A DNA stretch of 64,000 nucleotides from Octopus bimaculoides. Taxonomy: Eukaryota. The notes under the pieces are model-generated. The model worked only from the letters and a program-made list of their open reading frames with translations, had not been told where the DNA came from and made no database searches. Position numbers and translations under genes: made by a program. Shown here piece after piece: positions 41,943-42,181 of this stretch. Position 1 is the stretch's first letter. Each line of letters starts with the position of its first letter. Location: contig NC_068997.1 of NCBI RefSeq assembly GCF_001194135.2, positions 56,499,578 through 56,563,577 of the forward strand, in the 5' to 3' direction.

Positions 41943-42181
41943 GGCATATGGCATAAGAGCGCGGGCTACAAACCCCAAGATTCCGAGTTCAATTCCAGGC
42001 AGTGACCTGACTAATAATAATAACATCGAAAAAATACCTTAGGAATGAGAACCCAAGACACCTGATGAAAGCTGGAGAGAATATCAGCTGAAACGTTGTG
42101 TTAACAATAAACAAGATGAAGACAATTATCCGTCAAATGTAAATAATGTACATAATTCCTCATCGCTCAAATATAGAACTG
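41943..42181 (+). mobile_element. Family G sense copy (tRNA head, hammerhead, tail)
   Basis: Head with partly deleted A box, B box gagttcaattcc, intact hammerhead core, tail cataattcctcatcgctcaaatatagaactg. Confidence 0.9.
42057..42102 (+). ncRNA. Minimal PLE-type type-I hammerhead ribozyme motif (best copy)
   Basis: Stem I GACAC/GUGUU; core CUGAUGA (42062-68) plus A; stem II AGCUG/CAGCU; GAAAC; GUU triplet 42095-97; palindromic AACGUU in place of stem III. Confidence 0.7.

Follow-up and report, generated by a model that had tools for sequence, protein, structure and literature searches.

In the minimal hammerhead ribozymes (min-HHRs) of Penelope-like elements (PLEs), helix I measures only 4-5 bp, one base is left unpaired between A9 and 10.1, a fairly long helix II is closed by a G10.1-C11.1 pair, positions 15.2-16.2 are palindromic and loop 3 is lacking; such ribozymes are predicted to work solely in dimeric form (Cervera & de la Pena 2014, PMC4209133). 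The same study described solo min-HHRs dispersed by the thousand, including opposite-strand pairs 100-700 bp apart, and attributed the solo motifs to truncated PLEs. A hammerhead is also carried by Sm-alpha and Sj-alpha of Schistosoma, which are presented in a review (PMC6765202, for Ferbeyre et al. 1998 and Laha et al. 2000) as short interspersed element (SINE)-like retroposons with an RNA polymerase III (Pol III) promoter and a type-I hammerhead. Metazoan non-LTR (long terminal repeat) retrozymes have been proposed as non-autonomous PLE derivatives (2026 preprint, bioRxiv 10.64898/2026.07.22.740005). Here, a dispersed repeat family (family G) was analysed in 64,000 nucleotides of Octopus bimaculoides DNA (NCBI RefSeq assembly GCF_001194135.2, contig NC_068997.1, positions 56,499,578 to 56,563,577 of the forward strand; hereafter the window). 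The family is read as a non-autonomous retroposon that joins a Pol III-type head module to a PLE-type 3' module and is copied by a PLE rather than by a long interspersed nuclear element (LINE). We give this reading a probability of about 0.6.

The window was AT-rich, eukaryotic draft sequence containing N gaps. BLAST and nhmmer searches within it returned one ~270-bp non-coding repeat as five fragments in four neighbourhoods, which agrees with an earlier note, made from the letters alone, that had placed the element at four loci. The repeats were dispersed and 239-273 bp in size, and copies C, D and E were truncated. In a full copy, an A/B-box head leads through a (TAA)n spacer to a minimal type-I hammerhead (HHR), behind which lies a ~85-nt tail without poly(A). 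Copy A (41943-42181, + strand) was located by sequence reading, BLAST and nhmmer. Its head (41943-42010) had a partly deleted A box (TGGCATAAGAG), as the earlier note had seen, and a B box (GAGTTCAATTCC) at 41985-41996. The spacer and body followed at 42011-42056, without the 17-nt segment GGTTCGAAATT present in copies B and C, then the min-HHR at 42057-42102, identified by descriptor match and folding, and a 79-nt tail at 42103-42181 that ended AAATATAGAACTGA, had no poly(A) and ran into a (TAA)n microsatellite. Copy B (55844-56116, +) was full length, with its HHR region at 55991-56036 and a head comprising an A box (TGGCGTAGTGG, 55851-55861), an anticodon-like loop (CTGCTAA, 55875-55881) and a B box (GAGTTCGATTCC, 55894-55905). 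Copy C (55615-55846, -; HHR at 55690-55735) was inverted and 5'-truncated at approximately position 41. Copy D (26447-26553, -; HHR at 26500-26545) was 5'-truncated and retained HHR and tail only. Copy E (5129-5224, -) comprised the 3' half of the head, the spacer and the start of the body, followed by unrelated sequence. Copy E' (5222-5299, +) was internally deleted, with head positions 3-33 (5222-5252) fused to tail-end positions 233-266 (5266-5299); it was identified from weak nhmmer matches (E 0.07 and 0.6) and confirmed by eye. Full-length copies began at a defined base (GGGCATATGG) in B, E', the related locus L006 and the P0004 exon described below. The window copies are old, decayed insertions, and none equals the consensus ribozyme.

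Two further stretches adjoined copy A. An inverted partial copy of the tail region lay upstream at 41782-41850 (-; nhmmer E = 0.017). Directly before the head, ~80 nt (41860-41942, +) matched the stretch directly upstream of the head of L005, a related locus from another assembly, at 81% identity over 86 nt, and this 5' extension is probably part of the unit of the copy A subfamily. Copy A and L005 look, by sequence, like members of one subfamily. They were rejected as orthologous loci, as their downstream flanks do not align. The 5' extension was also provisionally rejected as a diverged upstream copy of the tail (a pseudo-LTR), its local alignment being no better than that of shuffles (z = 1.28, 122/1000).

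The copy A motif reads GACAC-CUGAUGA-A-AGCUGG...UCAGCU-GAAA-CG-U-U-GUGUU, all on the + strand. Stem I (5 bp) joins GACAC at 42057-42061 to GUGUU at 42098-42102. The core CUGAUGA occupies 42062-42068 and is followed by an extra A at 42069. Stem II pairs 42070-42075 with 42084-42089 (AGCUG(G)/(U)CAGCU, 6 bp including one G-U), and the 3' core comprises GAAA at 42090-42093 and C15.2, G16.2, U16.1 and U17 at 42094-42097. The predicted cleavage point lies after 42097. Both the motif coordinates and this predicted point were given exactly in the earlier note. The same note had called core and stems intact in copy A; this was overstated, as G10.1 has changed to A. Stem II is of 6 bp with one G-U. Helix III is reduced to two bp (A15.1-U16.1 and C15.2-G16.2) with no loop, and stem I is an open 5-bp helix. 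The palindromic ACGU (GAAA-CG-UU) was retained, without a helix III loop, in the octopus family and in other families.

Feature by feature, the family agrees with the PLE min-HHR (PMC4209133), the type to which it had first been assigned. All of the listed features are present, and the extra A after A9 is a hallmark of the type rather than a defect. Copies B and C, ~300 bp apart on opposite strands, fit the reported pairs. The octopus motif differs in its setting, a ~270-bp unit with an A/B-box head and with no reverse transcriptase (RT) or endonuclease (EN) coding sequence nearby. It also lacks the helix III, loop 3 and loop 1-loop 2 contacts of the canonical hammerhead, and is in this respect not of the Sm-alpha kind. 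Sm-alpha and Sj-alpha are nonetheless a direct precedent, being by the review's account short, non-coding and high-copy, with a Pol III promoter upstream of a type-I HHR. By description, the HHR of Sm-alpha is canonical, has loop-loop contacts and cleaves multimers of the transcript, and Sm-alpha typically stands in tandem, whereas the octopus HHR is a helix-III-less min-HHR and the window copies are dispersed or inverted. The suggestion that a Pol III element with a hammerhead might be undescribed was too broad. The combination of Pol III SINE and hammerhead is already known, and what would be new, judged from sequence, is the PLE min-HHR type with a PLE-type insertion structure.

A min-HHR descriptor was used that demanded a stem I of at least 4 bp, CUGANGA, a bulge of 0-1 nt, a stem II of at least 4 bp, GAAA, paired 15.2/16.2, U16.1 and H17. 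It matched the window once only, at 42057-42102 (stem I 5 bp, bulge, stem II 6 bp). On 1000 windows simulated with a second-order Markov model it gave 0 matches, and with relaxed stems 2 in 1000. Folding of the copy A motif was more stable than that of shuffles (z = -2.65), and its minimum free energy structure contained stems I and II. The catalytic core (C3-A9, G12-A14, A15.1-U16.1 and H17) was complete in copies A, C and D and in a 14-copy consensus. The earlier note had placed the hammerhead at the family's loci in general; the whole motif was found in A only, each of the others being disabled. Copy B has a mutated core (CCAAUGA). In copy C the core is intact, but stem I contains a U-U mismatch and position 16.2 is A; in copy D, too, the core is intact, with stem II disrupted.

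Conservation was examined in 14 copies, whose majority consensus was the intact motif. The 11 catalytic-core positions were 92.9% conserved, against ~79% for stems, loop and flanks. Non-consensus cells numbered 11/154 in the core and 107/518 elsewhere (Fisher p = 5.6e-5, indicative only as the copies are related). Conservation was lowest (57%) at the sole free core position, N7, which held U, A or C. No variation was seen (14/14 copies) at A6, A13, A14, A15.1, U16.1 or the bulged A. G10.1-C11.1 was present in 9/14 copies and in the consensus, and helix II was of 5-6 bp. One compensatory change separated families, 10.4-11.4 being U-A in octopus and C-G in another family.

Head sequences were searched for A and B boxes at transfer RNA (tRNA) spacing. 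The pattern was seen three times against 0.10 expected per window. It occurred in copy B (55851-55904), degenerately in copy A (41949-41995), and in the unrelated head of L002 (9898-9963). No TTTT was present on the sense strand of copies A and B. A Pol III-type head is supported by these promoter words, and a tRNA origin of the head is plausible. The tRNA likeness claimed earlier held for the A and B boxes and their spacing, and did not extend to recognition as a tRNA by ARAGORN or Infernal/Rfam (below). The assignment to tRNA-Ser(GCU) proved weak, because CTGCTAA occurred only in copy B and CTACTAA in most other copies. Cloverleaf pairing of the heads was not found: acceptor, anticodon and T stems do not pair. 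Extra B-box-like words were observed in the body just upstream of the hammerhead, GGTTCGAAATT in copies B (55965-55981) and C (55744-55760), and GTTCGAAGTTCC and GAGTTCGACAAAC in relatives L001/L002 (~10040-10085). These words may be remnants of a second tRNA-like unit.

Further copies were traced through the spurious open reading frames (ORFs) that gene callers place on repeats. The translated long open frame of the element matched UniRef A0A0L8FV75_OCTBM at 90% identity, as well as a gene model of O. bimaculoides at NCBI. Ten proteins were recovered with a profile of the translated element, and loci L001-L014 were taken from their contigs. A profile search of 1.84 billion representatives (50%-identity library) returned 1216 clusters, all of 51-199 residues, and a word-indexed search of a collection clustered at 90% identity returned 2837 proteins. 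These clusters and proteins are spurious short ORFs across relatives of the element, a considerable annotation artefact that affects one ENA assembly or more. They come from a highly abundant relative (MANGIRTGDPRGF...QTPEEGRRTYRPKRCGNNNKDEDNSPK...), present in ENA assembly ERZ21867824 and NCBI assembly GCA_052426985.1. When JGI metagenome and GTDB genome contigs were scanned for exact patterns, and metagenome contigs with a protein guide, nothing was found.

The relatives carried other A/B-box heads and bodies on a common 3' module, CUGAAGA-A-GGCCGG...CGGCC-GAAAC-GUU-GUG plus a similar tail. Identity over HHR and tail between octopus and L011 was 76% over 122 nt, and between octopus and L001/L002 was 77-85% over 52-75 nt, with no alignable similarity between the heads of the octopus element and those of L011/L001/L002. 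A consensus drawn from copies of at least four assemblies retained the motif, and the tail was common to non-autonomous families of several assemblies. The tail had no poly(A) and no 3' microsatellite, and was unlike the 3' regions of the LINEs compared (window 49.3-50 kb and the RTE-like element of L002), which upholds the earlier statement that it is not LINE-like. ORFs near related copies were gypsy-like (L011) and RTE-like (L002), with 3' ends unrelated to the element. A C-terminal fragment of a LINE-type RT (...DVDHLYLKRKQGGRGLTSIQ...) was observed in the window at 49254-49745 (+), and the region downstream of it was unlike the SINE tail. Exact-sequence lookup of the window's LINE-like ORF returned no record.

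One copy was observed within a gene model. The N-terminus of P0004, annotated by NCBI as O. bimaculoides 'dystrobrevin beta isoform X1', is MPMGIWHSGEGWRVYQPKCCVNNKQDEDKYPSK and equals a translated copy of the element in which the start of the head is fused to the hammerhead. A SINE copy is, by this match, what supplies the predicted first exon of P0004, by exonisation or mis-annotation. With P0004, three independent internally deleted derivatives were observed (5222-5299; 41782-41892; P0004), in each of which the first 10-33 nt of the head are joined to the 3' module. Recurrence of these joins suggests template switching in reverse transcription rather than random deletion.

Insertion architecture was compared at the nine loci that keep a 5' end. 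An inverted copy or fragment lay at most 150 bp from the 5' end at seven of them (B/C, E'/E, A, L006, L011, L002 and L015). With approximately one copy per 13 kb, as observed, the probability that copies adjoin by chance is under 1% per locus. Copy C abuts the first base of full-length copy B via a GGG/CCC overlap, and copies E' and E are head-to-head, repeating the B/C arrangement. Upstream of copy A lies a 33-nt inverted repeat (41805-41837 / 41860-41892, 85% complementary). At L006 two near-full copies stand head-to-head with 7 nt between them; at L011 a full copy is accompanied by an inverted partner whose head is truncated; and at L002 an inverted head fragment lies 142 nt upstream. In L015 (1-723, GCA_052426985.1) an inverted full copy abuts three direct tandem HHR+tail units of 129 nt (TRF: period 129, 3.0 copies, 91% match). 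Two or three tandem units were found in 17/150 of the best 150 translated relatives, and no direct tandem of the HHR unit was found in the octopus window by BLAST or nhmmer. As the inverted and tandem structures occurred in at least three independent assemblies, they are not an assembly artefact of one project. Insertions made by PLEs are characterised by loss of 5' sequence, by partial tandem copies and by a 5'-truncated copy lying inverted at the 5' end; tandem and inverted arrangements of this sort have not been seen in LINE-type target-primed reverse transcription (TPRT; Craig et al. 2021, PMC8557442). A PLE-type insertion architecture is supported for the element by this comparison, and among the new evidence it carries the most weight.

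The classical tRNA-SINEs of cephalopods were also compared. The octopus SINE families OK/OR1/OR2 are reportedly those of Ohshima & Okada 1994. These and the Ceph-SINEs share with the present family a head-body-tail layout, A/B boxes, 5' truncation and dispersal in cephalopods. They differ by their LINE-derived tails, the present family having no LINE-like tail, poly(A) or terminal microsatellite and having inverted or tandem insertions. OK/OR1/OR2 were compared by description. Identity with the Ceph-SINE domain was ruled out, that domain being CORE plus RTE 5' UTR (PMC5786205). MRC1 of Chlamydomonas (Craig et al. 2021, PMC8557442) is, like the octopus family, short and non-coding, with a PLE-linked 3' end and pseudo-LTR or head-to-tail structures. 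MRC1 has no Pol III head and no hammerhead, and belongs to another PLE clade and kingdom. In the literature searched, outside which lay Repbase, Dfam and the 1994 octopus SINE paper, no report was found in which a tRNA-type head is combined with a PLE min-HHR and PLE-type insertion, and none of that combination in cephalopods. Minimal hammerheads of PLE pseudo-LTRs are reportedly also treated by Lunse et al. 2017.

In the reading preferred here, anatomy, conservation pattern, shared 3' module and insertion architecture are observed, and transcription, copying in trans and dimer cleavage are proposed. The 5' module would be a Pol III promoter head of tRNA-gene type (A/B boxes), with the (TAA)n spacer and a short body behind it. 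In the 3' module (~130 nt), of a kind known from the PLE 3' end or pseudo-LTR, a min-HHR would be joined to the ~85-nt tail, and we infer that this module is the part recognised and copied in trans by PLE RT and GIY-YIG endonuclease. Pol III would start at the head and read through the element, with no T4 terminator on the sense strand of copies A and B. The ribozyme of the monomer would be unable to form helix III, and the RNA would stay whole with promoter and tail linked. The PLE machinery would then prime on the 3' module at a nicked target; an additional, inverted copy would often be left at the 5' end, and 3' modules would sometimes come to stand in tandem. Adjacent modules, or two RNAs, could pair via the palindromic ACGU to give a shared helix III and a cut after GUU, of the sort demonstrated for other PLE min-HHRs. 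In tandem arrays, such cutting would free RNAs of unit length, as happens with retrozymes. A SINE would lose its head to any active ribozyme within it (Kojima 2018, PMC5786205), and a dimer-only ribozyme would avoid that loss because the monomer would not cut. A wider claim is made tentatively, with the balance somewhat against it: that this is the first recognised SINE class mobilised by PLEs, with a min-HHR that is silent in the monomer and works in tandem arrays of 129-nt units, which would be smaller than any other retrozyme-like unit known, and that many solo min-HHRs of animal genomes are SINE copies and not truncated PLEs.

Several observations weigh against the PLE-copied reading. Some concern the missing partner: with the window and ~50 kb of related loci translated in six frames, no GIY-YIG or YxDD motif was found, and no remnant of RT or GIY-YIG adjoined any copy in the window or related loci. 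No target-site duplications were evident around copy A or the B/C composite; given the age of the copies and the variable duplications of PLEs, this weighs little in either direction. Others concern the head. In the heads, ARAGORN called no tRNA at its default threshold or with thresholds lowered to 90% or 80%; at 70% it gave one marginal tRNA-Leu call, in the head of relative L006. The Rfam tRNA model gave no match around A and B/C (E<=10) or in eight related loci (E<=1). As both were silent, the term 'tRNA-like' rests on a descriptor-level match.

The remaining adverse points concern the ribozyme. The Infernal scan for hammerheads proposed in the earlier note gave no Rfam match at the thresholds tried: none at the gathering threshold in the window (RF00163 Hammerhead_1 included), none at E<=10 around A and B/C, and none at E<=1 in eight related loci. 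This fits the absence of helix III from the motif, and it means that hammerhead membership rests on the descriptor rather than on a curated model. We take the silence of ARAGORN and Rfam to reflect the limits of the models for helix-III-less motifs and decayed heads. In hammerheads, the 10.1-11.1 pair is a conserved G-C at a position important for metal binding; in copy A it is A-U, and in the family consensus G-C. Covariation, also proposed as a check, was weak over the 14 copies. Paired cells were only marginally above shuffles (71.7% vs 69.6%, 53/500; score 0.162 vs 0.121, 26/500). Weak covariation is expected because the copies are decaying. The copies used for the conservation statistics are mutually related and were found via an ORF across the region, a possible source of bias. 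For the published PLE min-HHRs, cutting in vitro is poor, dimers included (PMC4209133).

The alternative that survives best is that the copies are head-less non-autonomous or truncated PLE fragments (pseudo-LTR only), transcribed through read-through or from a PLE promoter, with the A/B-box words coincidental or irrelevant. This is how Cervera & de la Pena 2014 interpreted dispersed solo min-HHRs (PMC4209133), and non-autonomous PLE derivatives such as MRC1 are known (PMC8557442). The heads were not detected as tRNA, copy A and L005 share degenerate heads and a 5' extension, and head-less HHR+tail units exist (D, the L015 tandem array and L012). The words are nevertheless hard to put down to coincidence, as boxes at tRNA spacing occurred in two unrelated heads on the same 3' module (copy B and L002 9898-9963) where 0.10 was expected per 64 kb. 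The shared start base of full-length copies and the lack of any adjoining coding remnant also speak against it, and we regard this alternative as doubtful.

Somewhat less room is left for an ordinary LINE-dependent tRNA-SINE, in which the hammerhead-like stretch would be a conserved body or tail domain for an RTE-, CR1- or L2-type RT and not a working ribozyme. The head/body/tail layout with A and B boxes is that of such SINEs, conserved domains across distant SINE families are well known (PMC5786205, PMC4758252), and RTE-dependent SINEs are likewise without poly(A). Octopus genomes are LINE-rich, with an RT fragment at 49254-49745 in the window, and covariation was weak. A conserved domain of this kind would leave unexplained why the stretch follows every constraint of the PLE min-HHR, including variation only at N7, and why the tail is without similarity to the LINE 3' regions compared. 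Inverted or tandem structures stand at most loci and are reported as no product of LINE TPRT (PMC8557442), and LINE-derived ribozymes have been argued to be avoided in SINEs as they cut off the head (Kojima 2018, PMC5786205). An ordinary LINE-dependent SINE is considered unlikely.

A retrozyme-type element, multiplied through self-cleaved circular unit RNAs and rolling-circle reverse transcription, with the window monomers as dead-end offspring, overlaps the PLE-copied reading and does not exclude it. Retrozymes are, like the octopus family, non-coding, HHR-bearing, non-autonomous and thought to be PLE-dependent (PMC7229834; Li, Clavereau & Pollet 2026), and monomers have been considered possible non-transposing offspring (bioRxiv 10.64898/2026.07.22.740005). 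The tandem 129-nt units of L015 and those in 17/150 of the best translated relatives are of the form expected. In described retrozymes the HHRs are canonical and make loop-loop contacts, the tandem units measure 170-400 nt, circular RNAs have been demonstrated and there is no tRNA-like head, whereas the L015 unit is of 129 nt with a min-HHR. With no direct tandem in the octopus window, and with poor cleavage by min-HHRs, this account taken by itself is held to be improbable. A chance resemblance to a hammerhead in an AT-rich repeat, for which the silence of the Rfam hammerhead models and the single descriptor match among four window copies might be cited, is very improbable given 0/1000 simulated windows with the motif and its retention, with core-specific conservation, in the consensus across at least four assemblies.

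Other repeats were observed in the window. A second, more abundant SINE-like family (GGCGAGCTGGCAGCATCGTTAGCG...GAGTTCAGATTCCGCCGAG...) was present in approximately 10 copies (25605-25824, 25827-25964, 10752-10959, 28980-29184, 56517-56685, 6546-6678, 16283-16422, 32053-32157 and others), and part of it was also present in L012, from another assembly. A third A/B-box element (TGGCTGAGTGG ... GAGTTCGACTCC, then GTGTCCTTGAGCAAGACACTT) was present as a single window copy at 10130-10300 (+), ending in a (TA)n run and an N gap. A decayed mariner/Tc1-type transposase lay at 29837-30862 (+), with frames ...FVKLGKSAAETLNMLRQSYDDEALGCTQCFKWHKRFKSGRTSLEDGEQ... and ...PNSPDLTPADFHFFPKMKRELELKGF....

For annotation, one copy of the element is the annotated first exon of an octopus dystrobrevin-beta isoform, and relatives account for thousands of spurious ORFs in public sets. 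SINEs are in practice defined as riders on LINE machinery, and a PLE-riding SINE family, if true, would widen that rule. It would also give a concrete source for very many orphan min-HHRs in invertebrate genomes and would link three separate literatures, those on Sm-alpha-type ribozyme SINEs, PLE min-HHRs and retrozymes. If the 129-nt unit of L015 is transcribed and cleaved, it would be smaller than any described retrozyme unit (170-400 nt). The helix-III-less design would have a rationale: a ribozyme that cuts only as a dimer would leave the promoter head joined to the tail in the monomeric transcript.

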